This document shows positions 4,759 through 41,027 of a stretch of 64,000 bases of DNA, one piece after another. The number at the start of each line of letters is the position of its first letter. Within the stretch, counting starts at the first letter, position 1. The DNA is taken from the NCBI GenBank assembly GCA_038087875.1, contig CM075979.1, positions 86,242,001 to 86,306,000 on the forward strand. The letters run 5' to 3'. The notes beneath the pieces were generated by a model. The model was not told the DNA's origin. It saw only the letters and a list, made by a program, of their open reading frames with translations, and made no database searches. This DNA comes from Malacoraja senta (Eukaryota). The position numbers were made by a program, and so were the translations under genes.

Positions 4759-6647
4759 GAGAGAACTGGAGGATCAGAAGATAAAATTGTGCAAATGGAT
4801 GTGGATGGTTTTAATAGTAACAGTGTATACAAAGGACAAATTCAATTTTATACCTACAAGCAAATACATTTGCATATTAAAAGGAATAAATCAGTAATAA
4901 ATCAGGAATTAATTCCACAAGTAACAACAGGAACACATTCTGTGTTGTTGCACTGTAGATATATACTTGTAAAAGAAACAACAAAAGCGTTAATATATTT
5001 TGCCTTTAATGTAGAGACATATATCAAATATAACATTCAACATGCATCACAGGAGCCATATGAAAAAACGTTAGGTAATGCAGATGAATGAAAGCTTGCA
5101 TTACGATGTTGGTATTTAGGAATGTTTTAGAGGATCAAAAAAGACATGGAGGCAGAGAGATTTGGAAAGAGAATTCCAGAATTAAGGATTGTCAAAAAAA
5201 GAAAAAATCATCAACACAGGAGCACAAAGTCAGATGATGAAAAGGCCAGAATAAGATAACAGATGCCTCAGGGGTCTTTAGAGAAGGAAGGAATTTCAAG
5301 ATAGGGGCGGGGCAAGTCCATGCAAGAATATGAAAATCAACATGAAATGTTTAATTAGACATTTTGCTTGACAGCAGACCAGCCAGTATGGTGCTGATAG
5401 TGAATGGGGCATTGCAAGCTAGGACTCGGCAGCAAGACTTTAGACCTCAAGTTAATGAAGAATAGAATGAGATGATCCTGCCATCATGCCTTGGAAGTCT
5501 CTGGGAGTTACGCAGCCATAGTACTGAGGCAAGGGTAGAATTCTAAATACCACAGAGGTGGAATTGTCTCATGTGATTGAGCATTTATAGGATGTCAAAC
5601 ATAACATTGCAGTTGTAAATATGTGATTCAATTTCAGACAAGGAGAAGGATGACATTGTTGACTAAGGAATGGAGTATGATACAGAAACTAAAATTTATG
5701 ACTTTTGCATTTCTAATAAGTAATTGTAGTGCATTTAACAGACAGTATACATGGCAGCCATCGCGTGTTGACAGGGTGGTTTTTGGAGTTCTGAACATGT
5801 GGGTAATTTTACTCTGAATGGCATCTAGCCTCATGAGAATTTATGGTGCTGCACTCTTCCATACACGTGCAGAGTTCTATCATGCTCTTGACTTCTGCTT
5901 TGCAGATAGTAAAAAGGTCTTGGGATATCAGGTGGTGTGTCACTTTCCACAGGATACCCAGTCTCTCACCAACACCAGTAGCCACAGTACTTATGTTGTT
6001 GGTCCAAATGAGTTTCCGATTTACATTCACCTCCAGTATATAAATGGTGGAGAACTTGGCAAAGATAACATCAAGAGTTTCTAGTTAGACTCCCTCTTAT
6101 TGAAGATTTTCATTCTCTGGTGTATAGTAACACAAATATCAGCCTATGCCTAAATGTTGAAGAGATATTGTTGCATGCAGGCATAAGCTCCTTCGGTTGT
6201 TGAGGAGTTAAGAATGGAATTAACTTCACTTTTACCAGGTGTCTTTATTGCCTTATTCAGTCAAATGCTGCCTTGGTAACAAAAGCATCACTGTCACTCC
6301 ACATCTCGCATTCAGCTCTTTGGTCCATGTTTGGACTGTGGCGATTGGAGTGAACTCTGTTGAAACACAAACTTGGCATTGGTAAGTCGGTTAATGGTGA
6401 GTAAGTGCAACTTGATAGCACTGTCAAAGAGAGGTTCCTTTACTTTTCTGCTGGATGGAGAGTAGATTAATTTGTTGGATTGGATTTTTTTGCTTTTTGT
6501 GAACAGGATATACCTGGGCAATTTTACACATGGTTGGATGGATACCAGTGTTATAGTTGTACAGGAACAACTTGACTTGTGTCATAGTGTTTTCCGGTAC
6601 CTAGGTCTTCAGTGCTACAGCTGGGATGTATTTGAAAACATTTAATG

Positions 6648-7233
6648 CAGGGGTCGGCAACCTTGTTCTGCGTAGGGGCCAGGACGCATGCCTGTGAGCA
6701 GATGGCGGGCCACTTCCATCACATGTACACATGGATCCCGCCCCCATCCCGAAAGGCAGGCACCAAAGCACGTGTTCACAGAGATCCCGCCCCTTCAAGG
6801 ACACCACCTGGAGCACTGGCTCCTAGTTATGGGCACTCACGAACACGGCGCACCTATGGACCATTGCCTTGGCTCTGTCCTGAAGGCGGTGGCTCAAATA
6901 CTCATACTCACTCGTCCCCGGCCTATTGACAACCCCGATCCGGACAGTGAAGCCCAGACACAGAAGGTGCGCGGCCGTGCTGGCGGCTTTGCGCAAGATG
7001 CGGTACAGCCAGAGCTCGGCCGTGCTCGGCGGCTCCGCCATTGCGGCCGCCAGTGCAGGCCTCCTTGCATTCTTGCGTCACTGTGCCTGGGCGCTGTGAC
7101 CTCTGGAGGTACCAGAGATGACGGAAGTCTGCAGGCCGGATGATTACGGAGAAAAAATATATATGCCTGCGGGCCAGATGATTTCGGGTTATGGGCCGCA
7201 TTTGGCCCGGGGGCCGTAGGTTGTCGACCCCTG
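6648..7233. mobile_element. Non-autonomous hAT (Charlie-like) element carrying host gene cargo
   Basis: 16-bp TIRs CAGGGGTCGGCAACCT / AGGTTGTCGACCCCTG (1 mismatch). Perfect 8-bp TSD ATTTAATG at 6640-6647 and 7234-7241. GGGCC subterminal repeats. Confidence 0.92.
6912..7041 (-). pseudogene. CYB561D2: Captured first coding exon of a cytochrome b561 domain-containing gene (CYB561D2-like), followed by its splice donor
   Basis: MAEPPSTAELWLYRILRKAASTAAHLLCLGFTVRIGVVNRPGT resembles the remembered CYB561D2 N-terminus ([32 protein letters not shown]). Kozak gcaATGg. Phase-1 donor A|GTGAGT at 6911-6906. Confidence 0.8.
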
Positions 7234-8916
7234 ATTTAATGGATCTATTAAAACACATGGCACACACTTCCTACGACAAATCGACCTCAGCAGCTGAAAT
7301 CCATCTATTTATCTATCTATATATCTAGTACTAAAACTCTCATCTTGTTTGTCTGTATGCGTGTTTGTGTATGTGATCCTGAAACTACGCCAAAACGATA
7401 CACGATAGCCCTACAATTTTAGCCCACCTTATTCACCACTGTCCTGTGGTGTGCTGTGGCATGTTTCATTCAGATTGATGGTATATTTTACAAGTTATTC
7501 ACATTTTAAACGTTACAAAAACCACTTTGACAACAATCACTTCTCTACTTGCCCTGCCTGTCAGCAGCGTTCATCACAATGACGTCACAATGGGATCCCA
7601 TATCTAATTTACATTAATAAAACGTGATTAAAAAAAAAAAACAGTTTTATTCAAATTCTTGGGGGGAGGTTTCATTTACAAAAAAAAAGCGCGATTTTCA
7701 CTGGGGGGGGGGGGTGGGGAGATAGGGGAGAGGTTTCATTTACAAAAAAAATTGTGATTTTCATTGTGGGGGGGTGGGATAGGGGGTAGGTGAGTGCTGA
7801 TGTCGCCCCCCCACGTGGGCCGATTGATTGGCTCTGAGATTGGCTCTAACAACCCACTCGACGCCCGATTGGTCCAATTTCCAAGTGGGGGAAGCGCCGA
7901 CACCGCTGCCAAACGTGGGGTCGTTTTGATTAGCCCCACCACCTCCCTCCCACTTGGGATCGTTTGATTGGCTCCGACCTCCAGCTCGACACCCGATTGG
8001 TCCGGGTCCCACATGGGGGAAGCGCAGCTTGACGCCCGATTGGTCGCAGTTCCGGATAAAAGCACGCTGGTTGTGCCCCGTGTCTTCTTCCTGTCGAGCT
8101 GCTACTGCTGCTGATTGATTGAGGGAATAAACTGCCAAATCGTTAAAGATAAGATTGATTTCATTTAAAAAAATGCAACTTTCATTGTGATGGATTTTAT
8201 TATTTAAAAAAAAATCTATTTAAATCAAATTTTTCCATGTTCATTAACTACTAACATTGTGTTTAGCTTCTTTTAACGAAAAAACGCTATTTTCATTTAG
8301 AGTTGCATTTTAAAAAAAAACATTGTGATTTTCATTGAGATTGATTTTATTCAAATATAAAAACTATATTTTGATCCAATTCTTTCGTGTTCATTGAGAA
8401 CTAACATCGTGTTTAGGTTATTTTGAAGTTTGATTTTATTATTTAAAAAAAAAAAAAATTCTCGACGCCCGATTGATCCAGGTACCACGTGGGGGGAGCG
8501 CTGACGCCACCCCCCAACGTGGGGTCGATTGATTGGTTCTGACCTCACGCTCGACGCCCTATTGGTCCGGGTCCCACGTGGGGGAAGTGCAGCTCGACGC
8601 CCGATTGGTTGCTGTTCCGGATAAAAGCACGCTGTTTGTCCCCCGGTCCTTCTTCCCGTCGAGCTGCTACTGCAGCTGATTGATTGAGGGGATAAACTGC
8701 TAAATCGTTAAAGGTAAGATTTATTTCATTTTAAAAATGCAATTTCCATTGCGATTGATTTTATTATTAAAAAAAAAAAATTTGAATCAAAATTTTCTGT
8801 GTTCATTAACTACTAACATTTTCAGTTAGAGTTGCATTTTTTTTTTAAATTGCGATTTTCATTGAGATTGATTTTATTCAAATGTAAAAACTATGTTTTG
8901 ATCCAATTCAAAATGT

Positions 8917-15703: not shown

Positions 15704-15903
15704 NNNNNNNNNNNNNNNNNNNNNNNNNNNNNNNNNNNNNNNNNNNNNNNNNNNNNNNNNNNNNNNNNNNNNNNNNNNNNNNNNNNNNNNNNNNNNNNNN
15801 NNNNNNNNNNNNNNNNNNNNNNNNNNNNNNNNNNNNNNNNNNNNNNNNNNNNNNNNNNNNNNNNNNNNNNNNNNNNNNNNNNNNNNNNNNNNNNNNNNNN
15901 NNN
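15704..15903. other. Assembly gap (200 N)
   Basis: Run of N. Confidence 1.
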
Positions 15904-17010
15904 GCAAGCTGATCACAAAAATGCTAGACCTTGGCCTCAGCAGTCAACTGTGTCGGTGGATATTGGACTTTCTCAGTGAACGCCCACAGACGGTGAGACT
16001 TGGACCCTACACCTCGACATCCCTGACCCTCAGCACAGGAGCACCGCAGGGCTGTGTGCTCAGTCCGCTCCTCTACGCCCTATACACACATGACTGCTTG
16101 CCCCATCACCCCGCAAATAGGATTTAAAAAATTGCGGACGATACAACCGTGGTTGGGCTCATCTCAAATGGGAACGAGGACGCCTATAGAGAGGAGGTGC
16201 ACAGACTTTCTGAGTGGTGTGCTCACAACAATCTCTCTCTGAACACTAAAAAGACAAAGGAGATCATCACTGATTTCAGGTGACATAGAGCGGAGCTCAG
16301 GCCACTGGAGATAGGGGGCGAGGAGGTGGAGAGGGTGCCTAGTTTTAAATTTCTGGGGATCAACATCAGTGAGGATCTTAAATGGTCTGTGAACTCTGCT
16401 GTAGTTGTAAAAAAGGCACAACAGAGACTTTACTTCCTCAGAACACTGAGGAAGGCCCATCTGTCTGCTAAACTGCTGGAGTCTTTCTACTGCTGTTCGG
16501 TAGAAAGCATACTGACTTACTGCATAACTGCCTGGTTTGGGAACTGTTCAGCAGCTGACAGAGCAGCTCTCCAGAGGGTGATAAAAACTGCCCAGGGTAT
16601 CATTGGACTCCCCCTGCCCCCTCTGGAGGACATTTACCACTCCAGATGCCGCAGCAGGACCTGTAATATCGTGAAAGACATTACACATCCTTGTCACCAC
16701 CTTTTCACACTGCTGCCCTCAGGAAAAAGGTACAGGTCGCTAAAGTCACGTACTGCCAGACTCAAGAACAGCTTTTACCCATCAGCAATCTTGGAACTGA
16801 ACTCTGTCTCGGGAGCGGATTATGGGGAAGGAGGGGGGGTGGGAGACAGTGTTAATTTATGTAAATGTGAATCCATGGGTGGGTTTGGGGAGTGAGGGAG
16901 TGTAAAAAGTATATGTGAATGTTTGAAGTTCTTTTAAATGGAGAGACACAGTAATCTCGTTGTATGTGACACATGCAATGACAATAAAGCATTCTGATTC
17001 TGATTCTGAT
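15904..17010 (+). mobile_element. Rex1/Babar LINE, RT C-terminal half with stops, truncated by the gap
   Basis: [43 protein letters not shown] plus (ATTCTG)n tail. Confidence 0.9.
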
Positions 17011-17014
17011 TCAA

Positions 17015-17173
17015 TTCCACCTCTTCCTTCCTTCCTTTCTTCCGCCCCCCCCCCCACCCCCCACCCCCACCCTCATCAGTCTGAGGAAGGGTTTCGACCC
17101 GAAACGTTGCCTATTTCCTTCGCTCCATTGATGCTGCCTCCCCCGCTGAGTTTTTCCAGCATTTTTGTCTACC
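17015..17173 (+). mobile_element. Penelope terminal fragment containing a minimal hammerhead motif (17081-17108)
   Basis: Near-identical to 59750-59905. CTGAGGA-a-GGGT-TTCG-ACCC-GAAA-CGTT. Confidence 0.75.
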
Positions 17174-19559
17174 ATTAATTCCCAGCATTTGTGCAAAGTG
17201 GCCACATTGTTACCATCTACAAGATGTGTTGCAATTACTCTGGATCTAAATCCTGGAACTCCATACCCAACCACAGGATTTCCTTGGATTACCTTGACCA
17301 GAAGTATTGTGTTAATTCAGGAAAATGGCTCATCATTGGCTTCACAAAATGCCTTTAGGTTCAAGCAATAAATCTTTGCTTGCCAGAGACACTCACTAAA
17401 TTTTAAGAATTCCACAAATCCAATAGGTCAGCATGTGATGCCATTACTTTCTTGTGTTTAATTTTTGAATTGTTTGGCTGTTAAAGGTATTTAGCAAATT
17501 ATAGGGCATCCGCGGTCTGTTTATCGGAGTGACTAGTGATGCTGATGGAAATCCCCAAAATATTACTATTGGTTATATGTACCATAATAGCAAACATGAT
17601 GTTCTCTGCTTTAAAATGATATCAAAGTAACAAACATAGATGTTAATACTCTCTAGTTCATTAAAAAAAAAAAAAATTGGGCTTTTCAAGATAATAAGTG
17701 ACTTGCTAGATAGAACTCATTTTAATATTTTCTACACCTAAGTTTTACCCAGGTAGTTGTGGCTAGGTTCAGAGAAATGTTCCCTCTTCACCGTGCCTCA
17801 ACACCAACTTTACTGCATTACAGCACTTTACTGCATTAATGTGAATCACCCATCCTTCATTTTTAACCATCAACATGGGTTTTGAGTTAACATGAGCAAC
17901 AAGCCATTTATGATTCAATTTTAAGATGATTTTGCATTTATTTTTGTAATGTACCTCAGAAAGCCAAATGAAATTTCTAGATCACAGTTGGTCTTCCAAG
18001 GCTCTTCCAGTTAGGAATGAATAGCAAATATTTTTCTGGGGAATGACCCAGGTGTTCACAAAATACTCCTTGCCTACGTCCCATGTTGGACAATATTCAA
18101 GTTTTAGATCTGCCTTACCCGTTTCCATTCTTGAAATGAGGCCACATGGTTGAGACTATTGATTTGGGTTTGGATGAGAAACATACAAATATTCTATCTT
18201 CTCATAGTATTATTCTTTATATCTTGGATACTTCTCAGGGTCCTTTCAACAAACTCGTCTTTGCTGTGAATTTCTTTTGCTCAGTAACTTTTTTGGTACT
18301 TCAGACAAGGTTCAAACAATAATATGGGGATAACTACAAACTAAATATTTAAGCCTTTCTCTTGCTTCTTCGTTTTCTGATAATAGTAGGAACAAATCTA
18401 AACTTTTTATTGATGACCCTTTCAAAACTCCTATTTTTTCTGACATTAACCTACTAATTAGGATACAAAACATTTCCATCTGTTCAACCACACCCCCTTC
18501 CAGCTGTAAATAATGCTTCCCAGTGGAAATAACCATAATAATTTTGTTACAAATCATACTTAGAAAATGAGTTGGCACCATGAGCTGTAAATATTGGAAG
18601 TCTCTGACCTCAACTGGGCCATCTAAGATATGCCAAGTGAAGATTTACTATGCATTGGTGTGTTCTCATGTAAAAATGCAGGAAGCTTTAAATATATTCG
18701 TTTGATTGGGAAATTAATTAGCTTAACTGAAGTAATACTTCCACTTTTAAAATCAAACTGCTGGAGGCACGCAGTGGGTCAGGCAGCATCCAGAGAGAGG
18801 TTCTCGACTCAAATGTTGACAATCCATTTCCCACCATAAAATGCCACCTGGCTGGCTCAGTTCATCCAAAAGTGTTTTTTTTTCCCCCGCTTCAGAATCT
18901 AGCATCTACAGTCTCTTGTGAATATTATATCCAATTTACATTGGAAACCACGTGCCCACTTCCATAATTAAAAGTTGTCCCATAACCTTATTAAACCGCT
19001 GGTGGAAGAACCCAAGGACATCAACAAATAAATAAATCCCGTGCCATATCCATGTCACCTCGCATTTCCTGTAATCCTCTAATTTCCTTGGTATATAGAA
19101 TAATTATTCAAACATCTCAAGATGTGGAGGAAAAGCAAACGAAAACGACACGTTTCACCAGGATTTAAAGTTCGACTTCAATTCCTTCTACGATGGTGCA
19201 ATACCCAGGAGGACCTTAGTACCGGAAATTGAATTAAAATTTATTCTGACCGATATATATTGTAAATGTTATAGCAACCTGCCTTATCTTTCCAAGGTGA
19301 AGTGACCAGCATTCTCCGTTCTTATTTCGGACAGGGTTCACTTGAGGTGGTTTTATTTAATTCCGATCAGTCGACTGTCCAAGACAGAATTTCAACACCA
19401 CGCCATCTCTGCACCGATGTCTTTCCGTGTGATTTGTTTTGCGCACTTAAAATATGGACGAGGGGACAGGTCGCTGCATATTATTTTTTTCATAAAGTTG
19501 CTGTTGTTGTTGTTTTCTCTTGGAGAATGTAGGCCGATAAATGAATAATTAAATCTTGA

Positions 19560-20000
19560 GGACACAACCTCGCCCCCTCCCTTGACGCACTCCGCACATC
19601 CTCTTATTCACCCTATTGTCCGAGTCACGTGCCGGCCCCAACGTGCTGGCGGCTCGTTCCGCGCAAAGTAGGAGGGATGAATAAACGCCAACCAACCGAA
19701 AAGCCCACGCTGCATGACGGGAATTGTAGTTCGCTTGGCTGTCTTGCGCCTGTCAAATTGCATTGCATCCCCCTTTCGTCCGTTGGAGGGTGTAAACTAC
19801 GTTCTCCATCTCCCTTCGCAGCCGGTGTCGCGCACGTGAGTTGACGCCTTGAGCTCGAGCGCTGAGCTTCTTGGTAGGTCTCAGTCAGTGAGTGGAAGAG
19901 AGCGCGTCCGCCATTTACAGTTGGGAAGAAAAGAGCGTGTGTGTTTCGGATCTGACAGACGGAATAAGCGCCCATCTTCTTGCCCTCCCCCCCCATCCCC
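19560..20000 (+). promoter_or_regulatory. WNK1: CpG-rich WNK1 promoter / TSS region
   Basis: Non-repetitive CpG-rich stretch ~1 kb upstream of the ATG. E-boxes GTCACGTG (19624-19631) and CACGTG (19833-19838), GC box ~19571, YY1-like CCGCCATTT (19908-19916). Confidence 0.75.
19712..19730 (-). promoter_or_regulatory. ZNF143 (SBS) binding motif
   Basis: Reverse complement ACTACAATTCCCGTCATGC is a close match to ACTACAnnTCCCAnnATGC. Confidence 0.8.
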
Positions 20001-20876
20001 CCTTCTCATGCGGGGGGCCCGGGCTCGAACTTATAACGAGGTGGAATATTGGCGATTTTCTTTTGTTGGAAAAATCAGTTCCATTGGAAGAGAAGAAGCC
20101 GGGATGTTTCGTATGTGGAAGGGACTGCAGTGAGAGCCTCTCCCCGGGCAGCTTGAGCTTGCCCTGTGGTTTCTATTGTTGCTCCCAGGCCTGTCTTGAT
20201 TGGCAGTGCGGGCTGTCCTTTCTCATCACCATCATTTGTTGACTTTTTAAGAAAAGCTTAATATTTTCATCGCATCCATCTTGAAAGCTGTGGAACCAGA
20301 GCCTTTACGGACATTGACGGAACAGTTGTGGCGCTGTACATCATCGATGTTTAAAAAAAAAGTGACTCCACATATTCACTGTTCTGCTATTGAGAGAACT
20401 ATCGCCACATCGTTGTAAAACGGATTGTTACTTTGAATGTGCTGTTTGGGTAACGAATATTCATTTTTGGAGTTTAAATCGAGGGAAAAGGGAGCTGTTT
20501 AGGCTGCTGACATTGACTTTTCCATTTTTAATTCCTTTGCCCTCCCGAGAAATTAAGACTGAATGAAAGCAGTTTGGGATTTTTAAATCAAGGATGGATG
20601 GATCACATCAGATGGTCCATGTTTATCACGCTGCATTGCAACTGACTGAGGTGGACAGTATTTTTTGTTTCTTTTTTAAAGGAACGTCTGTGTTCCAGGG
20701 ATCCGACCCTTTGCACATAAATAGCATGGAGTTATTTTGTATTTAAAAACTATCGGTTTGCAATTGTCTCCTCGTGGTTAACTAAAAAAATTGCATATCC
20801 TTTGAAATCTTGTTTTAGAGAGGAACCACTACATTTTGTTTTTTGAAGCCGATTGCCAATCGGTTTTCTTGTGGCA

Positions 20877-21692
20877 ATGTCAGAAAGCGCAGACAAAATT
20901 GGCTCATTATTGCGTCCTCCTAAAAATGGTACCAATTCCAGTTCGGATACTACAATAGGAGAACGTTTTGGAGTAAGTATGAGAAAAAAGGAAGAGTTCA
21001 CCGCCCTCAGGAGGCGGAGGCATACAATGGACAAGGATAGCAAAGCAGATCACCAACGTTTTATTAGGAGGAGTGTGATCTGCGATTCCAACGTAACCGC
21101 ATTGGACCATTTACCCAGTAAAACCAGCATTATCGTCTCTCCGCCTGAATCGGATAATGCAACCATATTAATAAGTAATGTTACCAATAATAATGAAGCA
21201 CAGCCTCCAATACAAGCAACTCCCGTTGACCCAGTCTCTACTGCAGTTCCTGTGATTAGAGAAGAAAAATGCGAAAATTGCACCGATGGCAGTGCGAAAG
21301 ATGGAAGCAGGGTCGCGGGTATTGGCGATGAACCATCTCGGCCCTCTATCCGTTCGCCCGATGTCTATGTTTGCAATTATGCCGTAAGTACAACTGGCGG
21401 CATCCTTGTCAGCAAAGACCGAAAAAAACAAAAAGCTGTTCCAATTAAAGAGGAGGTCGAGTCGAAAGTCAATGAAGAGGACAGTGCGGAGAATCGTGAG
21501 GCAGAGGAGGCAAGAAATCTAGAGAGAAAAGCGCAGGAGGATAATGAAGAAATAGAGACAAAGGCTGTGGCAACTTCCCCTGATGGGAGGTTTTTGAAGT
21601 TCGACATAGAAATTGGGAGAGGATCGTTCAAAACTGTCTATAAGGGTCTCGACACGGAAACAACTGTGGAAGTAGCTTGGTGTGAATTGCAG
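20877..21692 (+). CDS. WNK1: WNK1 coding exon 1 (N-terminus and kinase subdomains I-II)
   Basis: gcaATGtca start. [19 protein letters not shown] (Akt site) and [12 protein letters not shown] are WNK1 N-terminal motifs. GRGSFKTVY (catalytic Lys in subdomain I) and VAWCELQ (Cys replacing the usual Lys). Donor CAG|GTAAGC, phase 0. Confidence 0.96.
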
Positions 21693-24925: not shown

Positions 24926-25384
24926 CCAGCTAAAGATGTGTTACGTGCTCTATGGATACATAGAAAAGTGCAATGAGAAGTGGAGTTGGAAGAATAGAAC
25001 AAGAAATTCCAGAGGAAATTGTTCCTTTCGAAAGACGTCTGGTGGTGGAATCTCATTGGTGATGGGCATTGTGAGGCATAACCATTGAATGCAGAGTAGT
25101 GGGATGGAAAGTGGAGATCTGAGAAACTATCCTTGTATTGGTAATTCGAACAATCTTGGCATTGACATATAAAAGAGCTAAGTCACCACACTAACGCAAT
25201 CTGTGATCTATCCTGGAAGAGGAGTGGGTGCATACTGAGATGTGGTCAAGGGCTATTCAGTTATGGCAGTTTGAAGCCCCAGTTCAGGAAGAAGGAAAAC
25301 ATCTGAGGCATATATGGGTTGTCTCCAATGAGTCTCCAAAGGAGTAGATTGTTTCCTTGTAGGAGGCAAGTTTAGAAGATGTAT

Positions 25385-25830
25385 TGTGTAGGAAGGAACT
25401 GCAGATGCTGGTTTAAACCAAAGATAAACACAAAAAGCTGGAGTAACTCTGCGGGACAGGCAGCATGCCTGGAGAGAAGGAATGGGTGACATTTTGGGTG
25501 GAGACCCCTCTTCTGACTGGTTTGGGATAAGGGGAAACAAGAGTTATGGACGATGGTGTAGAGAGATAATGAACAATGAATGAAAGATATGCAAAAAAGA
25601 AACGATGATAAAGGAAACAGGCCATTGTTAGTTAGCCTTTTTGTTGGATGAAAACAAGAAGCTAGTGCGACTTGGGTGGGGGAGGGATGGAGAGAGAGGG
25701 AATGCCGGGGTTAGTTGAAGTGAGAGAAATCAATATTCGTACCACTGGGCTGTAAGCTGCCCAAATGAAATATGAGATGCTGTTCCTCCAATTTGCGTTT
25801 AGCCTTACTCTGATAATGGAGGAGACCTAT
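25385..25830 (-). mobile_element. Penelope-like element 3' fragment
   Basis: Encodes RKLEEQHLIFHLGSLQPSG on the minus strand. Terminal sequence homologous to 59630-59940. Confidence 0.8.
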
Positions 25831-26467
25831 TGTTGAGATGACTGAGAATCCTTGGGCTAGCAATGGAGATTTGTTGCTAATTTATCCCCTTGGGGGGGCG
25901 GGGGGGGGTCCAGAAAATGAGTGAAGGAATAGATTGTGTGAAGGTGAGGGCAGGTTGGAAAATGACAGAAAAAGTAAAGAAAAGTACCTCTTCATTTGGG
26001 TAAATGTTTTAAAATTTAATAGACTCTTTTTGTTGCTAATATTTTTCATGCACTCTTTTTCCTTCCTATTCTGCTTTCTCAGTTTAATCAGGGTTTTCTT
26101 TTTACCTATTCCATCTTGTATGCTCCTGACCATCCATTGGTGTGTTGGAGAGATTGAGATTTGTGTTGAGAAATCTGCCATATTTCTCACTGGGGACATA
26201 TATACTCTGACTCCAACTCCTCTTTGAATATCTTTGACCAATGTGATGGTGTTTACTTTGGCTCTTTCTGTCCACTTTTGCTAAGTGATATCTTTATACT
26301 TGATCTGCAATTTAAATTTTATTTCTGGTCTATCCTTTTCGTAATGCTAAACCTAACCAAATTGAAAACACTATTGCTACTGCTGCTCTGACCTGCCCGC
26401 GTTGAAAATACATTACAGTATGATTTTGATAAGTTGAAGGATTGATTAAAAAAAGACAGGTTCATGC

Positions 26468-26600
26468 AGTCAAGTCAAGTCAAGAGAGTTTATTGTCATG
26501 TGTCCCAGATAGGACAATGAAATTCTTGCTTGCTGCAGCACAACAGAGTATTGTAAGCATAAATACAGAACAGTTCAGCGTGTCTATATAGCATAGACCA
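26468..26600 (-). mobile_element. Rex1 3' tail fragment followed by (TA)n
   Basis: Reverse complement of the tail at 460-540. Confidence 0.7.
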
Positions 26601-26613
26601 TATATATACATGG

Positions 26614-26649
<36 letters not shown>

Positions 26650-27145
26650 CTATTATGTTATGCCCCTTTCATCTATTTGGTTGTTAATTTAATATTGGTT
26701 GAGATCAGGAAAACGTAATCGGCTACTTTGCTAAATTTTGGGCTATTAAATAAAGACTGTTGGCTGAGTAACACAAGATTGTGGATAGAAACGCATTCAT
26801 GGTTGCATGTGCTAAATGTCTGATGAAGTTGAGTGTGGCTGGTGAGTGGGGCTAATTAAGCAAACTGCTTTGTCATGGATGGTATTAAGTTGCTTTCAGT
26901 GTGGTTGAAACTGCATTTATCCAGGTACGTGGGGGAATTCCATCGCTTTCCCGATTTGTTCCTTCAATGTGATGATGGAAAGGAGTTGGGTTGTTGCTAC
27001 TGGACACATAGCATCTGGCTTGCTTGAATAATCCATAGTTAAGTAGCTGGTCCTGTTGAATTTCTGGTCAACGGCTAGTGCCATAATATAGACAGTTGGG
27101 ATTTATGTGATGGTAATGCTATTTAATGTGAAGGGTAGTTGGTAC

Positions 27146-27787
27146 AATAGATAATTGACAATAGGTGCAGGAGTAGGCCATTTGGCACTTCGAGCCAGCA
27201 CCGCCATTCAATGTGATCATGGCTAATCATCCCCAATCAGTATCCCGTTCCTGCCTTCTCCCCATATTCCCTGACTCCGCTATCTTTAAGAGCCCTATCT
27301 AGCTCTCTCTTGAAAGTATCCAGAGAACCGGCCTCCACCGCCGTCTGAGGCAGAGAATTCCACAGACTCGCAACTCTGTGAGAAAAAGTGTTTCCTCGTC
27401 TCCTTTCTAAATGGCTTACCCCTTATTCTTAAACTGTGGTCCCTGGTTCTGGACTCCCCCAACATCGGGAACATGTTTCCTGCCTCTAGGGTGTCCAAAC
27501 CCTGAACAATCTTATATGTTTCAATAAGATCCCCTCTCATCCTTCTAAACTTCAGAGTGCACAAGCCCAGCGGCTCCATTCTCTCAGCATATGACAGTCC
27601 CGCCATCCCGGGAATTAACCTTGTAAACCTACGCTGCACTCCCTCAATAGCAAGAATGTCCTTCCTCAAATTAGGGGACCAAAACTGCACACAATACTCC
27701 AGGTGTGGTTTCACTAGGGCCCTGTACAACTGCAGAAGGACCTCTTTGCTCCTATACTCGACGACTCTTGTTATAACGGCCAACATG
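27146..27787 (-). mobile_element. 5'-truncated CR1 LINE
   Basis: EYRSKEVLLQLYRALVKPHLEYCVQFWSP..RRMRGDLIETYKI, followed by the CR1 3' tail. Confidence 0.92.
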
Positions 27788-28434
27788 CGACTCTTCTGTT
27801 GAAGGTGATCATTGCCTAGCACTTATCTGCTTAACTCTGAGAAGTTATAAATAGAATGACAGTTTTGGCGTCATCATTGAGTGTCCCCGTGTTTGACCTG
27901 CCAATGGAAGGTTGATGCTAAAGCACTACCCTGAAGAACTACCGTGCTGACTTCAGACTAGGATGTGTGGCCTCTAACTGCCATAATCTGTTGTCTTTTG
28001 TGAAATGAATGACTCCAGGTGTAAGTGTTCTCTTGAGGGCAACTGAGTTCAGTTTTACCAGACTCATGGTACTACAATCAGTCAACTATTGCTCTTCTCC
28101 CCCACCAATTGTAAAGTGTTGACCTTCAAGCTCTGATCCTGCCACCCAAATCCATAGATTTCTAATGATTATCTTTGTTGCTTTCCTGTGGCATTAGTTA
28201 TTTGTACATCTATTTCTCTATGACCTCTAAGAATCCATGTTTTAATTTAAGAGCTGCCATTCACCATAAATCACAACCTGTTTTTGAAGTTTCAGAATCT
28301 TATACAGTACCTATGTATAATATTTAATTTCTGAATTATATTGAAATTGTTTTGCTGTGGTGTTCCAAAGTAATTAATTTATATTCTGCTCATTTAAGCA
28401 TCAGTGTACAGGACTGTCCTGATCTTGAAAGGAG

Positions 28435-29410
28435 GTATCGCATAGCTGGTAGAGCTGCTACCTCCGTGCCAGAGACCCGGGTTTGATCCTGACCTTGGGT
28501 GCTGTCTCTGTGGAATTTACATGTTCTTCCTGTGACCCTGTGAATTTCCTCCGGGTGCTCCGGTGTCCTCCTAGATCCCAAAGACATGCAGATTTATAAG
28601 TTAACTAGACCAAGCGCAGACCCGTTGGGTCTCGTTCCCCCAATGCAATATTCCACCAAACTGCGCATGCGCGGCTGACGGACCCGCACTGCGCAGGCAC
28701 GACTGCCGCGTTCAAAGTTGTGCCGTTGACGGCAGAAATTAAGTTAGAGTTAATAAAGTGAATAGAGGACCCGTGGAGGCGTTTGTAAAATAGAACAAAA
28801 CGTACCCAAGATGAGGCCAGCCAAGTACACGTGGAAAAAAAAAATGGCGATCTGAAAATCGGCAAAGGCCCCAACTGCGCACGAGCGGATACCGGGCCCA
28901 CTGCACACGCGCGGGGAGACGCCGTCATTTTGCGTCACTGCCCTGTCACTGGCGCCATTTTCAATTGTGATGCGGCTGACTGGCCTCCCTCAACAGCGCA
29001 GGCGCGGCCGGCAAGTGGGGGCGCTGTATAAAGTTAATTTAAGTTTTAAGTCTCAATAACTTGTAAAATATAACATCAATCTGAATGAAACTTGGCTAAT
29101 GCACATCGCAGGACAATGGTGAGTAAGGTTGGCCTAAAATTGTAGTGCTATCGTGTACTGTTTTTGCGGAGTTTCGGGAACAAATATATATACAAACAAA
29201 CAAGATGAGTTTTGGTAATAAAATAATAATTATTATAATTATATATATAATAGATAGATTGGCTTCTGTAAATTAGGAACTGCAGGATAGGAACGATTTA
29301 GAGGAATATGGGCTAAATGCGGGTAGTTGGAACAAATGTAGGTGGGGCATCTTGGTCGGCATGGATAAGTTCGGCCGAAGGGCCGGTTTCTGTGCTGCAT
29401 GGCTCTAACT
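28435..29410 (+). mobile_element. V-SINE (HE1-like) split by Helitron D
   Basis: A/B-box head at 28440-28490. SINE sequence ..aagttaa|ttggct.. is interrupted at 28604/29259. Confidence 0.75.
28605..29258 (-). mobile_element. Non-autonomous Helitron D (654 bp, intact termini)
   Basis: Minus strand reads A|TCTATCTA...AGACCC-AAC-GGGTCT hairpin...CTAG|T. Inserted between A and T with no TSD. Confidence 0.92.
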
Positions 29411-30759
29411 CATTGCTGTCCTCATCTTCTTAAAGAGAGTAATGTAATGTGATCAGGCTGTTTCATTTTTTGAGGGAGTTAGATGTGATGGTGTCTTTTT
29501 TTACCAAGTGTCATCAAGAATGGCTTTCATGCAAAAAGATTGGTTTGTGTTTTGTGTTGTATCATTCTAAAGGTATCGGTAGATGGCGCTCTGATCACAG
29601 GTTTTATTTTTCACTTTGCATTAGCAGGGCACCTAATGGTGTGCTTGATTTAGATTTTCCAATGTGCTTTTACAACTGAAAGAGTGAGCTTGTCTATCAT
29701 CATTGTAGGTTCAAGATTTGCAAAAAACGGATTGAGAATAATAATTGTGCTCAGCAGTTATGATATTCATTTTTGAAAGGTCATTGTAAATAACTGTCAC
29801 ATTGCTAAGAGAATTACGTGATTTTCTTGTGAATTTGGTTGGTGTATTTGATTTTCTTTTTTTAAAACAGCTCAATATAGAGCCTGTCAATATATGATTG
29901 AAATATTAAGTTAGTAGATGAGGCTGTGTACCTTAATTTCAGCTCATCCAAAGAGAAGAAAATCTTTTGCAGGCATGAAGTTTCTACTCTAAATATATAA
30001 ATTGCACTTTGAAATAAACTAGATCTGCTGAAACACTTGGAAAAATCCACAAAGCTCTACTATAAGTTCTACTATAATGTGATGGTTGTGTTCTTAAGAA
30101 ACCTCGCATTGATGAAAATTACATCATAAAACCAATCGTGTCAATGGGGGAAAGGGGGTTAGGGGCGAGAGAGTTTCAGACTGTCAATAGAAGTTTGCTT
30201 ATTACAGGATGTTCAAAAATAAATATCTTTTGATTGCTATAAATTTTATTTTTGTTGGAAGTTAAAACTATAAAAAGCGAAGTAGCATTGTTGACTAGAG
30301 CATTATTGAACGTGTCAAAAGAAGCAATTGGTTGTCAAATCCAGTGGCCACGTGGTGATACTGACAGACTGTTCTTAAGCAATAGTGTCTGATTAATGTG
30401 GGGAGATTACATGTAAGCAGCTTTTTTTCCTATCCAGGCAGATGTCATTGAAATTAGAAAAGTTAAACCACAACTAAGCTGATCTGAGGTTGAAGCCTCA
30501 CTTTTTGAACCTCACTCTTTTAGTTTCACTGTGGGCACTGTGCACAAAGCTCTCAGAAAAAAGTAACGCAGAAAAAGTAGTTTTAGTGATGTTGATTGCA
30601 GTATAGGTGTTTTGGAGGAAATAAACAATACTTGTTCTTTGAAATAGCTCCATGGGATTTATTCTCCCCTTGAGAACAGGAGTCTCTTTGCATTCTTAAT
30701 GTCCAGGTGTTTGTGCAACAAACATTAGAGCTGCAGTAGAAAGGGCAGTTGGATAGCAT

Positions 30760-32422
30760 CAGTGCCCTCCATAATGTTTGGGACAAAGTCCCATCATTTA
30801 TTTATTTGCCTCTGTACTCCATAATTTGACATTTGTAATAGGAAAAAAAATCACATGTGGTTAAAGTTCACATTGTCAGATTTTATTAAAGGGTATTTTT
30901 ATACATTTTGGTTTCGCCATGTAGAAATTACAACTATGTTTATACATAGTCCCCCCATTTCAGGGCACCATAATGTTTGGGACACATGGCTTCACGGTGT
31001 TTGTAATTGTTCAGGTGTGGTTAAATGCATAATTTTGGTTAATAATATAAGAGAGCTCTCAGCAACCCATCTTTCCTCCAGTCTTTCCATCACCTTTGGA
31101 AACTTTTATTGCTGTTTATCAACATGAGAACCAAAGTTGTGTCAATGAAAGTCAAAGAAGCTATTATGAGACTGAGAAACAAGAATAAAACGGTTAGAGA
31201 CATCAGCCAAACCTTAGGCTTACCAAAATCAACTGTTTGGAACATCATTAAGAAGAAAGAGAGCACTGGTGAGCTTACTAATCGCAAAGTCTATTGTCTA
31301 TTGAAAGGGACTGGCAGGCCAAGGAAGACCTGCACAGCTGATGACAGAAGAATTCTCTCTATTATAAAGAAAAAATCCCAAACACCGGTCTGACAGATCA
31401 GAAGCACACTTCAGGAGTCAGGTGTGGATTTGTCAATGACCACAGAAGGATTCATGAACAGAAATACAGAGGCTACACTGCAAGATGCAAACCACTGGTT
31501 AGCCGGAAAAAATAGGATGGCCAGGTTACAGTTTGCCAAGATGTACTTAAAAGAGCAACCACAGTTCTGGAAAAAGATCTTGTGGACAGATGAGATGAAG
31601 ATTAACATATCAGAGTGATGGCAAGAACAAAGTATGGAGGAGAGACGGAACTGCCCAAGATCCAAAGCATACCACCTTATCTGTGAAACATGGTGGTGGG
31701 GCTGTTATGGCCTGGGCATGTATGGCTGCTGAAGGTACTGGCTCACTTATCTTCATTGATGAAACAACTGCTGGTGGTAGTGGCATAATGAATTCTGAAG
31801 TGTATAGACACATCCTATCTGCTCAAGTTCAAATAAATGCCTCAAAACACATTGGCTCGTGGTTCTTTCTACAGCTAGACAATGATCCCAAACATACTGC
31901 TAAAGCAACAAGGTAATTTTTCAAAACTAAAAAATAATAAATTTTTGAGTGGCCAAGTCAATCACCCGATCTGAACCCAATTGGGCATGCCTTTTATATG
32001 CTGAAGAGAAATCTGAAGGGGACTGGCCCCCAAAACAAGCATAAGCCAAAGATGGTTATAATACAGGCCTGGCAGAGCATCACCAGAGAAGACACCCAGC
32101 AACTGGTGATGTCCATGAATCGCAGACTTCAAGCAGTCATTGCATGCAAATGATATGCAACAAAATACTAAACATGACTACTTTCGTTTACATGACATTG
32201 TTGTGTCCCAAACATTATGGTGCCCTGAAATGGGGGGGACTGTATATAAACACTGCTGTAATTTCTACATGGTGAAACGAAAATGTATAAAAACGGCTTT
32301 TATTAAAATCTGACAATGTGCACTTTAACCACATGTGATTTTTTTTCTATTACAAATCTCAAATTGTGGAGTGCAGAGGCAAATAAATAAATGATGGGTC
32401 TGTCCCAAACATTATGGCACTG
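30760..32422 (+). mobile_element. Tc1 (Passport-like, IR/DR-type) transposon, full length, transposase disrupted
   Basis: ~220-bp TIRs starting CAGTGCCCTCCATAATGTTTGGGACA with internal direct repeat. ILWTDE, KHGGG, DNDPKH, WPSQSPDLNPI motifs. TA after the right end. Confidence 0.92.
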
Positions 32423-33669
32423 TATGTCATGCATTTGATTTTGTGTAAATAGTTTTCAAAGTGCCTTTTCTTATTCATTTTCAGAAACTTTTTTATAAAC
32501 AACTTGAGAGTTTCAATCAAGGGTTAACTAGAATTTTGAAGTTGTAACAAAGGAATGCTGACAGCACTTGTCAAGTAAGGTGGCAGCATTTGGGTGAGAA
32601 ACTATTGACATTTCAAGTAAATGGAGAAAGTGAGTAGTGTTAAAGAATTTGTTGTTCAATGTAAAAATTAAGATCAGCCAGGTGATGAAGAATAATGATG
32701 GAAGGAAACTAGAAAGGTTTTCCTTGTTGAAGGCTTCTACAGGAAAATTGAAGCCCCTCAGATCATTCTGATGAGAATCAGAGGTGTAGGGAAATGTAAA
32801 TCTCATCTTTGCAGAAAGCTGCTGTATTATACCTATGTCTGTTGCGCTGTGAGATAAGGGGAGATGGAGGAGAAATATTTTAAACATGTCACTCGATCTC
32901 AAAACAAATAAAACCGGATTCTCTGAAATCTTGTACAGTTTACTAATAAACATAACTATTTCTGTTAATTCATTTGTCACGTTCTATGCAGTTCTCTATG
33001 ATACATTTGGCACAAATGGCTAACTAGCTTTAAGACACTCATGGTCACTTTTCTGATGTGTTTAGCCAGACTTTTGGACCAGAACTCTCCATTACTGCCT
33101 TTAAATTTTGAGCATGTATCCCAGCTCTGACCTTGTACTCCACCAGTAACTACTGTTGCAAGTTTGAGATTCCTCTGTACTCATTAGCCTTTTGCTTGCA
33201 TCCCCAAGGTCAAATCCTACTACTGTTGCCATATCTGATATTCGCAATGCAATTTAGGTCCTGCAGCCCACTCAATTGACTTTGCCACCCAATGTTCTTC
33301 TATCCATCTTCTTGCGTATGGCGTGCACAGCCTAAAGTTGTAGGACAACTTGTTCTATTTGATCTTATTTGATTGTGCACACCGGGTTGATTGCATTCGT
33401 TGAAACAGGGCGGACCATGTGAAGGTTGCAATCTTCCACCCCCTTCTGTCCATAAAGATTGCAAACTATCTTGCATCTTTCCTTCAATGCTATCATTCTG
33501 CTTATTATGTGCTGCATACTTATTTGAGAAAATACATTATGTTTGATAGAATATGTGTTTAAATGGCTTCATTTCTATGAATCATCACTTTTGGTAGTGT
33601 GGTTCCACTTTATCAGAATCACTGATTTATTGAGATAGTTTATCCCTTTCAATATGAACAAAACCAAAA

Positions 33670-34037
33670 GATTGTTAAGGGTTTGGACACGCTAGAGGCA
33701 GGAAACATGTTCCCGATGTTGGGGGAGTCCAGAACCAGGGGTCACAGTTTAAGAATAAGGAGTAAGCCATTTAGAACGGAGACGAGGAAACACTTTTTCT
33801 CACAGAGAGTGGTGAGTCTGTGGAATTCTCTGCCTCAGAGGGCGGTGGAGGCGGGTTCTCTGGATGCTTTCAAGAGTGAGTTAGATAGGGCTCTTAAAAA
33901 TAGCGGAGTCAGGGGATATGGGGAGAAGGCAGGAACGGGGTACTGATTGGGGATGATCAGCCATGATCACATTGAATGGCAGTGCTGGTTCAAAGGGCCA
34001 AAATGGCCTACTCCTGCACCTATTGTCTATTGTCTAT
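33670..34037 (+). mobile_element. CR1 3' fragment
   Basis: SRTRGHSLRI..FFSQRVVSLWNSLP..GYGEKAGTGY plus tail tctattgtcta. Confidence 0.9.
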
Positions 34038-34959
34038 ATGGTATTAAATCCTACAATTCATGCATAATTTTGGTAAATATAACCTTTTCCTTTTTTTGCC
34101 TGTATGGTTGTCCAGCTCGACAGATCTTGTCTGAAGTGATGATGAACATAAAATCAAAAATAAGAAAGCGTGTTAGAAATCACGTCGATCATTTATTTTG
34201 CAGAATTACAAAAGACAATGAGAAGAACTTGCTAATAAAATAAGCGCTAAATGAATAGCTTAAAATAAGTCCTCATACAGCAAAACTTTGTCCGAAGCAG
34301 GTAACCGCTTATTTTTCTAACAGTTATACCTAATCCTAGATTCTTCCGCCAGAGAAAATTATTCTTTCCTTATCCATCCTATTAGGACTGCTCAGGATCT
34401 TCTTTTCGATCAACTACCCATTCTCTCTTCTAAATTCCAGGTGGTGCTAGCCTAGCCTATCCAATCCTTCTTAGCAACTCAACATGTCCATTGCAGGTGT
34501 TAAAGTAAAAAAATACTGGAAACACTTTGCACATTAGGCAGTGCCTATGGAAAATGATGGTGTGTTTAGGTTCTGACTAGGAGTCTATGACCTTAAATGT
34601 CAACTCTTTATTTTTGTTAACACTAATACTTTTTATTAGAACCTGAAACAGTATCTCCCTTTCCATAGAAACTGCCTGAGCTGCTAAGTGTTATCAGCAT
34701 TTCTGTCTTTATTTCAGATCTCCAGCATCTGCAGTTTTCTATTACTTTCATTCCAGGTATTGGTTCAGTAAACCTTTAAGCTGAATCCAACACATTTTCA
34801 TCCTTGGATAAAGGAAACCGGTACTGTACATAATACTCCTGTGGTGTGAAAAATATCTTCTCTAATCAACCAAGACCTGAAGCCTGTATAGTAAGCATGC
34901 AATGGCTATCCCACATTAAAAGAAACTAAGCACAGGCAACTTCCACTCCACAATAACTC

Positions 34960-35398
34960 CATTCAATATGATCATGGCTGATCATCCAAAATCAGTACCC
35001 AGTTCCTGTTTTTTCCCCATGTCCCTTGATTCCATTAGCCCCAAGAGCTAAATCTAACTCTCTTGAAAACATCCAGTGCCTTCCGTGGCAGCAAATTCCA
35101 CAGATTCACAACTCTGGGTGAAAAAGTTTTTCCTCATCTCAGTCGTAAATGGCCTACCCCACATTCTTAAACTGTGAACCCTGGTTTTGGACCCCCCCCC
35201 CCAACATCCGGAAAGATTTTCCTGCATCAAGCCTGTCCAATCCTTAAGAATTGTATATGTTTCTATAAGATCCCCTCTCATCCGTCTACATTCCAGTGAA
35301 TACAAGCCCAGTCGACCAATTCTTTCATCATATGTCAGTCCCGCCATCCCAAGAATTAACCTGGTGAACCTACGCTGCACTCCCTCAATAGCAAGAAT
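34960..35398 (-). mobile_element. CR1 3' fragment
   Basis: QRRFTRLILGMAGLTYDER..RGDLIETY. Confidence 0.85.
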
Positions 35399-35789
35399 AT
35401 TATCATCGTCATTAAAAAAGATCCATCATGAATTAATTCAAGACATCAACTTCATTCTTCAAATATTCAAAATTGCTTAATCAAGCTTGCAGTACTTGGC
35501 AAAACTAAAAGGAAAGACTTATGAGTTATAATAGTCAAATGTCTTCAGCAAAGGATCCAGCCAACAAAGTCAATTTACACAAAAAAAGTATTTAAACATG
35601 AGCTTCCTCTGTTTAGAACCAGTGTTTGGAGATAATTGCATACAAATTATGTGCATAAAATGAAACTTGATTAACACAGGAATTCCCAAATTATTCATGT
35701 TCTGGCTTGCTGAAGTAAGAATTTCATTGTTCAGTTTCCATGCATATGACAATGAAACACTCTTGATTCTTGACTAAAGTGTGGTCACC

Positions 35790-36325
35790 ATGTGAGCTTA
35801 TTTAATGGTATGGCAACTGTTCTGCCCAAGACTGCAAGCAATTGCAGAGAGTTTTCAATGCAGCACAGTCCACCTCGCAAACAAGCCTTCAAACTTCCCC
35901 TCCCCCATCCTCATCAACTCTATCTATGCTTCATGCTGCCTCGGACAACTTGCAGCCTGGTCATTCTCTTTTCCTCCTCTTTCCTGTCAGGTAAAATATA
36001 CAAAAAGTTGAAAGCATGTGTCATAAGACTCAAGAACACCTTATTTTACCATCACTATCGGACTTGAACGAATCTCTCCTATAATCGGGATGAATTTGTA
36101 ATCTACTATCCATACATTTGTAGTTACGCTTACTTTGTATCAGCAACACTATATTCTGCACTTTGTTTATTTTTTCTTTTGCACTACCTGATATCCTTGT
36201 GTATGATATGATTTAGAAAAATAGGTGCAGGAGTAGGCCATTCGGCTCTTCGAGCCAGCACCGTCTGACTAGCATGCAAAACAAAGTATGGTGTATCTGG
36301 GTACAAGTGGCAACCAATACCAAAT
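35790..36325 (+). mobile_element. Decayed Rex1 3' fragment with a short CR1 tail inserted (36213-36263)
   Basis: Homologous to 2030-2470. Confidence 0.6.
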
Positions 36326-37678
36326 CCTCCTCCTTCTTAACCAATATCAAATTGATAATTTTCAAGAGGCAGTTGTGAATGGTGAGATAAGTGACAGATA
36401 GTCCAATAATGCTTGTGTCAGGGGTGCAGCAGCAGCTAGCAAGTGATGGACAGATCCAGGTGAGGAGTGGGTGGGCAGAAGTTTGTATAAATACTATGAT
36501 CAGTGTCCAGAACCTTTGTTTCAAGTTGTGGCCTGGTATGAACTTTTCTGATAGAAAAATACATTTTTGCTCCTTGTGATTCCAGTGTGAATAACGCTGC
36601 TTGTGATATTCAATGCAAGTAGTTTGCAGGGGCCACGGAGCTTTTTTACAAGTGGGGGGAGGGTGTGGGAGGGGGTGATCCCCTCCCATGGTAGGGACTT
36701 TATTAAATTTGATGTATTAAAATCATGTTTTAGTGCATTGTAGAAGTATGATTTCAATGTTTTTTGTTTGAAGTAATTTTAAGATAATGTAGGGCCTGCA
36801 TGGGAGATATGAGTAGGTGATTATTATTTTTGTTATTGCTTGACCTCCAAAAACTGGGGGATAATAATACAGGCCATCCCCCACCTCAAAAGTGGGGGGA
36901 TATATCCCCCTCCCCCCCACTCCGTCCGGATCGACGCCAGTGCCTTCCACGGTACAGAAACATTGACAAAACAATTTTTTTATGTGTTATAAAGTGTTTT
37001 TTTGTTTTTTAGTTGGAAAAAGGGACAAGAAATAATCATAACATTTCCTGATTTTGCAGTCATACAAATTATGTTTTGCTCGGGGGAAAAATCGGAGTAT
37101 TTTGAAAGTATGCGTTCTCCTTTTGACGTACATTTCATTTGATATGAATTTAGAATCATCAAACCATGACAATAAAGGGGGTATATGTTTGTGGAAACAT
37201 TACTTTTTTATTTTGTTAAATAAACGTTAATTTTCGAGAAATCTAAAATGCATTAGAAATATACATTTCAATGCACTGAGTCTCTTGCCCAGAGTAGGTG
37301 AATTGAGGACCAGAGGAAAGATTTAAGATGAAGGGGAAAAGATTTCATAGGAATCTGAAGGGTAACTTTTTCCACACAAAGCGTGGTGGGTGTATGGAAC
37401 AAGCTGCCAGATGAGGTAGTTGAGGCAGGGACTATCCCAATGCTTGACTGTTAGACTGATGCATGGATAGGACAGGTTTGGATGGATATGGACCAAAAGC
37501 AGGTAGTGTAGCTGGGACATGTTGGCGGGTGTGGGCAAGTTGGGCCGAAGGGCCCGTTTTCACACTGTATCACTCTGTGACTACATTATACCTCCACCAT
37601 GCATGAATGCATGAATGCTTCAAAATCAAGTGGTCAAGTTTTATTGGGCAAGAGTGACCATAATATGGTTGAGTTCTT

Positions 37679-37856
37679 ATATTTAAGAGGGAGTTAGATG
37701 TGGCCCTTGTGGCTAAAGGGATCAGGGGGTATGGAGAGAAGGCAGGTACGGGATACTGAGTTGGATGATCAGCCATGATCATATTGAATGGCGGTGCAGG
37801 CTCGAAGGGCCGAATGGCCTACTCCTGCACCTATTTTCTATGTTTCTATGTTTCTA
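37679..37856 (+). mobile_element. Short CR1 3' end fused head-to-tail to the long CR1
   Basis: Near-identical to 40502-40679. Confidence 0.9.
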
Positions 37857-40680: not shown

Positions 40681-40695
40681 TGCCATATACTCAAG

Positions 40696-41027
40696 CATAG
40701 AAAATAGGTGCAGGAATTTCCCATTCGGCCCTTCGAGCCAGCACTGCCATTCAATATGATCATGGCTGTTTGTCTAAAATCAGTACCCCTTTCCTGTTTT
40801 TTCCCCATATTCCTTGATTTTGATAGCCCCAAGAGCTAAATGTAACTCTCTCTTGAAAACATCCAGTGAATTGGCCACTGCCTTCTGTGGCAGAGAATTC
40901 CACAGATTCACAATTCTCTGGGTGAAGAAATGTTGTCCTCATCTCTGTCCTAAATGGTCTACCCCTTATTCTTAAACTGTGACCCCTGGTTCTGGACTCC
41001 TCCAACATCGGGAACATTTTTCCTGCA
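40696..41027 (-). mobile_element. CR1 3' fragment, tail-to-tail with the long CR1
   Basis: AGKMFPMLEESRTRGHSLRIRGRPFRTEMR. Confidence 0.88.

Follow-up and report, generated by a model that had tools for sequence, protein, structure and literature searches.

Capture of host gene fragments by cut-and-paste transposons is well documented in plants, and in animals it has seemed rare and nearly always single-copy (PMC8277862). In rice and other plants, Pack-MULEs (Jiang et al. 2004, cited in PMC4224331 and PMC8277862) are inverted-repeat elements that carry gene fragments with their introns kept. In animals, Tan et al. 2021 (PMC8277862) described 370 Pack-TIRs from 100 genomes, of which 208 are on hAT elements, the most frequent carriers, and 4 are multicopy; the worked multicopy example has three copies, and multicopy cases are explained there by transposition after capture. 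One element from that survey, Pack-hAT-N8_XT of Xenopus tropicalis, carries the 5' UTR of CAPSL, and the word "shark" does not occur in the text of the paper. The HelibatN3 Helitron of vesper bats (Pritham and Feschotte 2007, described in PMC4224331) is present in about a thousand copies, whose cargo extends from the NUBPL promoter and 5' UTR through the first exon into intron 1, and the same study reports that 5'-end cargo amplifies better than other cargo. A search for literature on CYB561D2 together with transposons, or on hAT or Pack elements of skates and cartilaginous fish, found nothing relevant.

We analyzed a stretch of 64,000 nucleotides from the skate Malacoraja senta (hereafter the window) and focused on a 586-bp element at positions 6648-7233. 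We conclude that this element is very probably an old, decaying copy of a skate family of non-autonomous hAT-type transposons, which captured the 5' end of CYB561D2 and then transposed with its load. The terminal inverted repeats of hAT elements are short and begin with (C/T)AGNG, and their preferred targets are of the nTnnnnAn or nnnTAnnn type. The element is bordered on both sides by the 8-bp target duplication ATTTAATG, and it ends in 16-bp inverted repeats that start with CAGGGG (Table 1). Both had been recognized in the first-pass annotation as perfect; the duplication is, and the inverted repeats agree at 15 of 16 positions in this copy. The mismatch at 7224 is private to the window copy, because the majority of the family forms a perfect 16/16 repeat. 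At up to three mismatches the 16-mer has only these two matches in the 64-kb window, with a chance expectation of 0.29. In assembled contigs of four species, sequences with unrelated flanks stop exactly at 6648 and 7233, with 53-92 break-off contigs listed per DNA run at the left end and 56-76 at the right end in three DNA runs. The consensus of the flanks over many copies is approximately CTCTAGA(C/G) and is identical on the left and the right, as expected for the target duplications of a hAT-like element. Judged from duplication length, repeat start and target preference, the element would belong to the hAT superfamily.

Table 1. Features of the element and its borders, in window positions.
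Feature	Position	Strand	Observation
Left target-site duplication, ATTTAATG	6640-6647		same 8-mer at 7234-7241
Left 16-bp terminal inverted repeat, CAGGGG start	6648-6663	+	contigs break off at 6648
Left transposon arm, the element's own DNA	6648-6702		without similarity to CYB561D2 loci L002-L004
CYB561D2 intron 1 fragment with donor (6911-6906)	6703-6911	-	130/153 (85%) to Rhinoraja over 6759-6911
CYB561D2 first coding exon copy	6912-7041	-	91% to Rhinoraja, 95% to Leucoraja-type mRNA
65 bp directly upstream of the CYB561D2 ATG, 5' leader	7042-7106	-	53/65 to Rhinoraja
Right transposon arm	7107-7233		without similarity to the gene loci
16-bp terminal inverted repeat at the right end, with the private mismatch at 7224	7218-7233	-	contigs stop at 7233
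Right target-site duplication, ATTTAATG	7234-7241		repeats the left 8-mer

The only gene-like frame within the element is the captured exon of 43 codons, and there is no transposase. An autonomous relative with matching ends was found neither in the 64-kb window nor in 68 kb of related skate loci, and no Rfam family matched within 6000-8000. Its length, the absence of a transposase and a depth of 600-8,800 times single copy (a rough measure) describe a MITE. The element resembles vertebrate hAT MITEs in being shorter than 600 bp, in its 8-bp duplication, its CAGGG start, its high copy number and its lack of transposase. It differs from ordinary hAT MITEs in that about two-thirds of it is recognizable host gene DNA, whereas theirs is transposon-derived or unassignable sequence. 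The right arm holds sub-terminal direct repeats (7129-7149 and 7167-7187) and the ETS-like motif CGGAAGT at 7122-7128. This motif had been noted earlier as a feature upstream of the captured exon; it is present, but it lies within the transposon arm and is not gene-derived. A contig from another copy shares the right arm only from 7107 outward (X1 record 6).

The gene-derived part is read on the minus strand. Its start codon, at 7041, has a strong Kozak context and begins a 130-nt frame of 43 codons and one further base, which ends in phase 1 and is followed directly by a GTGAGT donor, all as originally described. The peptide had been attributed to the N-terminus of CYB561D2, and three comparisons agree on this. 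In a phmmer search of 1.8 billion proteins the best match was a shark CYB561D2 (P0003, E = 9.5e-6), and the significant matches were short CYB561D-type N-termini. When shark CYB561D2 proteins were searched against the window by tblastn, a single spot was hit by residues 1-46, with E-values down to 5e-13. Among 120 vertebrate orthologues a stingray was closest, at 77% identity, followed by sharks at 56-63% and mammals at about 51%. Within the cluster of skates and rays the identity was 74-86%: 37 of 43 residues (86%) to the little-skate protein P0138, 84% to Narcine, 81% to Rhinoraja and 74-77% to stingrays. P0138 agrees with the Leucoraja erinacea protein at 100% across its 171 residues, and the contig that encodes P0138 matches the L. 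erinacea genome at 99-100% identity. The peptide thus identifies the host as a skate; a vesper bat, considered at first, was rejected because identity to mammals is only about 51%. Used as a protein query for other copies, a 72-aa open frame of the element returned no candidates.

To place the captured piece relative to the gene, we compared it with the CYB561D2 loci of Rhinoraja longicauda (L002), L. erinacea (L003) and Amblyraja radiata (L004) and with a little-skate mRNA contig (L001). A contiguous 348 bp, from 7106 down to 6759, is 85% identical to the R. longicauda locus and 84% identical to those of L. erinacea and A. radiata. In the exon, 112 of 123 positions are identical to Rhinoraja, and the element has an additional 6-bp in-frame insertion. 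The mRNA tracks the element to the last base of the exon and then passes to exon 2 (SLFSWHP). This switch at the donor confirms the exon boundary, its phase 1 and the retained donor, and with it the proposal that similarity to the protein stops where the first coding exon ends. The alignment to the gene loci continues across the exon-intron boundary into about 155 bp of intron 1. Because similarity runs through the donor into the intron, we conclude that the gene fragment was captured as DNA; leader, exon, donor and intron 1 align to the gene as one stretch, which bears out the DNA-level capture suggested at first. We considered a processed retrocopy and rejected it, since the element retains the donor together with about 155 bp of intron 1.

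The cargo thus begins 65 bp 5' of the ATG, spans the whole 130-nt first coding exon with its donor, and reaches about 155 bp into intron 1. Similarity to the leader ends at 7106. At the other end, the terminal part of the intron fragment is matched once more, by 6703-6744 (score 56; highest score after shuffling, 26), which explains an internal 49-bp duplication (6720-6744 and 6769-6793) that is absent from other copies, where it appears as a joint 6733>6783. Taking the 348-bp alignment and this second match together, we place the gene-derived part at about 6703-7106, approximately 400 bp, between arms of about 6648-6702 and 7107-7233. Capture limits of 6715-7135 had been guessed from the letters, and the gene alignment moves them to these positions. 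The description of the cargo as promoter-proximal holds in part: gene DNA upstream of the ATG is included, but it amounts to only 65 bp.

No transposon arms or inverted repeats were found in the CYB561D2 loci L002, L003 and L004, so that a parental locus free of inverted repeats, as had been predicted, exists in each of these three related skates. An internal DNA copy with non-coding parts and a parental gene without arms are features of a Pack-TIR. The same comparison bears on the opposite direction of transfer, in which the first exon of the gene derived from the transposon family. The shared sequence by itself is compatible with this direction. The N-terminal peptide motif, on the contrary, is conserved in CYB561D2 from sharks to mammals, the gene loci have no arms, and similarity extends on both sides of the exon into the leader and the intron of the gene. 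We give a derivation of the exon from the transposon an almost negligible probability.

The RefSeq CYB561D2 models of L. erinacea (171 aa) and A. radiata (163 aa) begin downstream of exon 1 and do not include it. The exon is present in both genomes (L003:8450-8584; L004:7424-7558) and is spliced in L001, and the annotated range of NPRL2 overlaps it in these skates. Masking of a repeat-like exon, or the overlap with NPRL2 on the other strand, may account for the missing exon. Two further database proteins, P0005 (59 aa) and P0006 (67 aa), consist of a CYB561D-type first exon reading into intron-like sequence (RPGTSKF... and RPATSEF...). They may represent gene models left unspliced, or copies captured in some other organism.

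We then asked how far the loaded element is spread, using assembled contigs of four related species aligned to 6000-7900. Copies were estimated as the summed assembler word depth divided by the single-copy depth, which yields orders of magnitude and not copy numbers. In the contig set X1, the left flank is covered by a contig without differences from the window at a single-copy depth of 28.7, which indicates that X1 is the same species as the window. The summed depth over the element in X1 ranged from 17,000 to 251,000, and the three other species were similar. By part, it was 251,000 for the left arm, 25,000-37,000 for the intron part, 107,000-166,000 for the exon core (6832-7023), 17,000-21,000 for the ATG and leader, and 132,000 for the right arm. 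Relative to single copy, and as rough values from summed depth, the ATG and intron parts stand at about 600-1,300 times, the exon core at about 5,000 times and the left arm, where depth peaks, at about 8,800 times. Depth was lowest at 7032-7103, and most members have lost the ATG region. The family is common to at least four related species, and its words occur under eight organism labels.

Both arm-to-gene junctions are spanned by contigs (X5 records 26 and 32) that differ from the window copy by 12-15%. At this divergence, the bridging contigs come from other copies. Contig depth, bridging contigs and mixed flanks together point to loaded copies elsewhere in the genome, at least several hundred of them near full length and thousands shorter. 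The first-pass annotation had suggested that the loaded element moved as a unit and had presented it as a rarely described carrier of a captured exon. Movement as a unit is supported by the bridged junctions and by a depth hundreds- to thousands-fold above single copy. The element is indeed a carrier, but it belongs to a high-copy family and is not a rare single element. Neither the 64-kb window nor 68 kb of skate CYB561D2 loci contained a second copy.

These data also bear on whether the locus could be the product of a single site: the genuine 5' end of CYB561D2, a segmental duplicate of it, or gap-filling in a resident transposon that never moved. Most animal Pack-TIRs are in fact single-copy gap-filling products without transposition (Tan et al. 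2021, PMC8277862), which speaks for such an origin. Several observations count against it. The depth of the gene part is hundreds- to thousands-fold above single copy in four species, and the junctions are bridged by diverged contigs of other copies. By tblastn no further CYB561D2 exons (SLFSWHP onward) were found in the window, including the 6.6 kb downstream in the direction of the gene, and in Rhinoraja the entire gene occupies no more than 5.8 kb. Exon 1 of the little-skate gene, moreover, is 5% diverged from that of the window copy and is set apart from it by a 6-bp indel. We therefore regard a single-site product as extremely unlikely, and the earlier caveat that downstream exons might reveal the genuine gene is answered by their absence from the window and by the multi-copy nature of the segment.

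The history of the family can be read from the positions at which the window copy departs from it. At all 16 of 16 sites in the gene part that differ between the window copy and the family majority, the majority has the base of the Rhinoraja gene. By these shared bases, the whole family descends from one captured founder. The window copy has accordingly decayed by about 5% from a founder about 91% identical to the Rhinoraja gene, the identity obtained once private changes are corrected. One of the private changes lies at 6942, where the majority base restores a glycine that is found in every skate and ray protein. The arginine of the FTVRIG motif had been read as a hint of decay, and this reading is correct, as both the gene and the family majority encode glycine. 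We also considered an "AAST" signature, shared with the little-skate protein, as a lineage marker. It was rejected: the majority of the family carries the ancestral "AAGT" base at 6981, and since the substitution is a CpG transition, AAST probably arose by parallel decay. The insertion is shared, at the identical site, by a species with a 3.4% diverged flank (X5 record 25), which dates the window insertion before that split.

The most abundant members of the family are internal-deletion derivatives, with recurrent joints in DNA and RNA runs at 6744>6900, 6818>6902, 7020>7131/7134/7165 and others. What these forms retain is the arm, the donor with about 120 bp of the exon, and the far end of the intron fragment; most of the intron fragment, the ATG and the leader are missing. 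Because the short forms keep two separated pieces of the gene in gene order, we conclude that they derive from the long form and not the reverse.

The source of the fragment can be placed among the skate genes. The fragment shares about 11 character states with Leucoraja and Amblyraja against Rhinoraja, and about 12 states, several indels included, with Rhinoraja against Leucoraja and Amblyraja. An insertion just upstream of the CYB561D2 ATG in the rajid genes, 57 bp long in Leucoraja and 25 bp in Amblyraja, is absent from the Rhinoraja gene and from the transposon copy. The rajid insertion is flanked by the 9-bp direct repeat GGCCGCAAT (L003:8395-8449; L001:833-887). The mixed shared states suggest that the source gene sits between those skate lineages, and such a position fits capture within the host's own lineage.

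Capture might instead have occurred in another species, with the loaded element entering skates by horizontal transfer. Families of hAT transposons are known for horizontal transfer, and the fragment reaches no more than 84-85% identity with the three skate genes. On the other hand, skate genes are the nearest to the fragment and its shared states place it between them, its peptide identity drops with distance from skates through stingrays and sharks to mammals, and its identity to Rhinoraja rises to the corrected value given above. We consider horizontal transfer of a loaded element very unlikely, and we favor capture within the skate lineage.

The founder of the family took up about 350 bp of DNA from the 5' end of CYB561D2, consisting of leader, first coding exon, donor and part of intron 1, and the loaded element then transposed as a unit. 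The uptake could have been a template switch during repair or replication. From the known biology of hAT elements, a transposase made elsewhere would bind the inverted and sub-terminal repeats and move the element by cut and paste. Donor-site repair, or transposition during replication, would increase the number of copies, and the deletion derivatives would arise from aborted gap repair.

The origin of the cargo raises the question of whether the family has a role in transcription. NPRL2 and CYB561D2 are arranged head to head, only 180 bp separating the two start codons (L001:628-1013; L003:8189-8575), and the RNA contig L001 spans the 5' ends of both genes. This contig suggests that the capture took in part of what is probably a bidirectional promoter region. 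The CpG observed/expected ratio of the captured piece is 0.74, compared with 0.95-1.0 at the parental loci and 0.22 in the flanks. We examined one polyA RNA-seq read set and three contig runs listed as RNA, one of which was flagged as probably DNA. Spliced reads leaving 6912 had been predicted. In these RNA sets, which come from related species and few tissues, none were seen: there was neither a joint nor a pile of loose ends at 6911/6912. The sole recurrent joint in the raw RNA reads, 6818>6902, is the DNA subfamily variant and occurs in DNA runs too. Family sequence occurred in the RNA data in either orientation, with the coverage profile seen in DNA, and the flanks of the window copy had almost no RNA coverage. 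The splicing test is a weak one, because the RNA is from related species and the samples are few. The window copy itself is probably inert, given that it is about 5% removed from the majority, carries the disabling arginine and gave no sign of transcription or splicing in the data examined.

An alternative view of the family is that of a dispersed cassette of promoter, first exon and donor, which starts transcripts or donates 5' exons to genes in its vicinity, the exon shuffling proposed in the first-pass annotation. The CpG-island-like composition that is kept, the head-to-head NPRL2/CYB561D2 region from which the cargo comes, and the intact ATG, Kozak context and GTGAGT donor of the window copy speak for such a role, as does the bat Helitron whose equivalent NUBPL part feeds transcripts (PMC4224331). 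Against it stand the missing joint at 6911/6912, the DNA-like RNA profile on both strands and the nearly uncovered flanks, all subject to the weakness of the test, as well as the capture of only 65 bp upstream of the ATG and the loss of the ATG region in most members. We judge an active cassette to be unlikely.

Measured against the systems described so far, the skate element resembles animal Pack-TIRs in being non-autonomous, in having inverted repeats and an 8-bp duplication, and in carrying a host gene fragment copied as DNA. Unlike the Pack-TIRs of PMC8277862, its depth implies hundreds to thousands of copies along with deletion subfamilies, and its host is a cartilaginous fish. By the rough measure of summed depth, the copy number exceeds that of those Pack-TIRs by two to three orders of magnitude. 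HelibatN3 is the nearest analogue in cargo and scale (PMC4224331): its cargo is likewise the 5' end of a gene through the donor into intron 1, and it reached the same scale of amplification. A Helitron, in contrast, is a rolling-circle element without inverted repeats or target duplication, whereas the skate element is of the cut-and-paste hAT type. The use of HelibatN3 in transcripts was shown; for the skate element none was seen in the weak RNA test described above.

The skate family shares with Pack-MULEs transduplication at the DNA level with introns kept. Pack-MULEs differ in belonging to the Mutator superfamily, in being found in plants and in having mostly low copy numbers per element. 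Mutator elements make target duplications of 9-10 bp and have long inverted repeats.

A broader possibility is that skates host a general, as yet undescribed burst of cut-and-paste transposons with a preference for capturing CpG-island gene starts, comprising leader, first exon and donor, which are then amplified to MITE-like numbers. We regard this as doubtful at present. If true, it would be orders of magnitude beyond any animal Pack-TIR reported. In such a burst, the CYB561D2/NPRL2 fragment would have aided the success of the family, for example through open chromatin or escape from methylation, and some copies would now be alternative first exons or bidirectional promoters. Surveys of Pack-TIRs may miss the most successful cases, as amplified loaded elements are plausibly catalogued as ordinary repeats. 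Hundreds of dispersed copies of a start codon with a donor could serve as raw material for new first exons and promoters, as bat Helitrons have done.

Several other features of the window were recorded. A TDP2 exon 1 element with terminal inverted repeats had been claimed at 36627-41507; a quick scan found no inverted repeat at its ends, and the region does not contain the 16-bp repeat of the 6648-7233 element. Positions 15704-15903 are a run of 200 N, either an assembly gap or a mask. To the right of the element, 7280-7790 is also of very high copy, with a summed depth of up to 239,000 at 7472-7535, and this neighboring repeat has recurrent break points of its own at 7463, 7469 and 7520. The left flank at 6256-6575 is moderately repeated, at about 4-24 times the single-copy depth, and the element may perhaps lie inside or beside an older low-copy repeat there.
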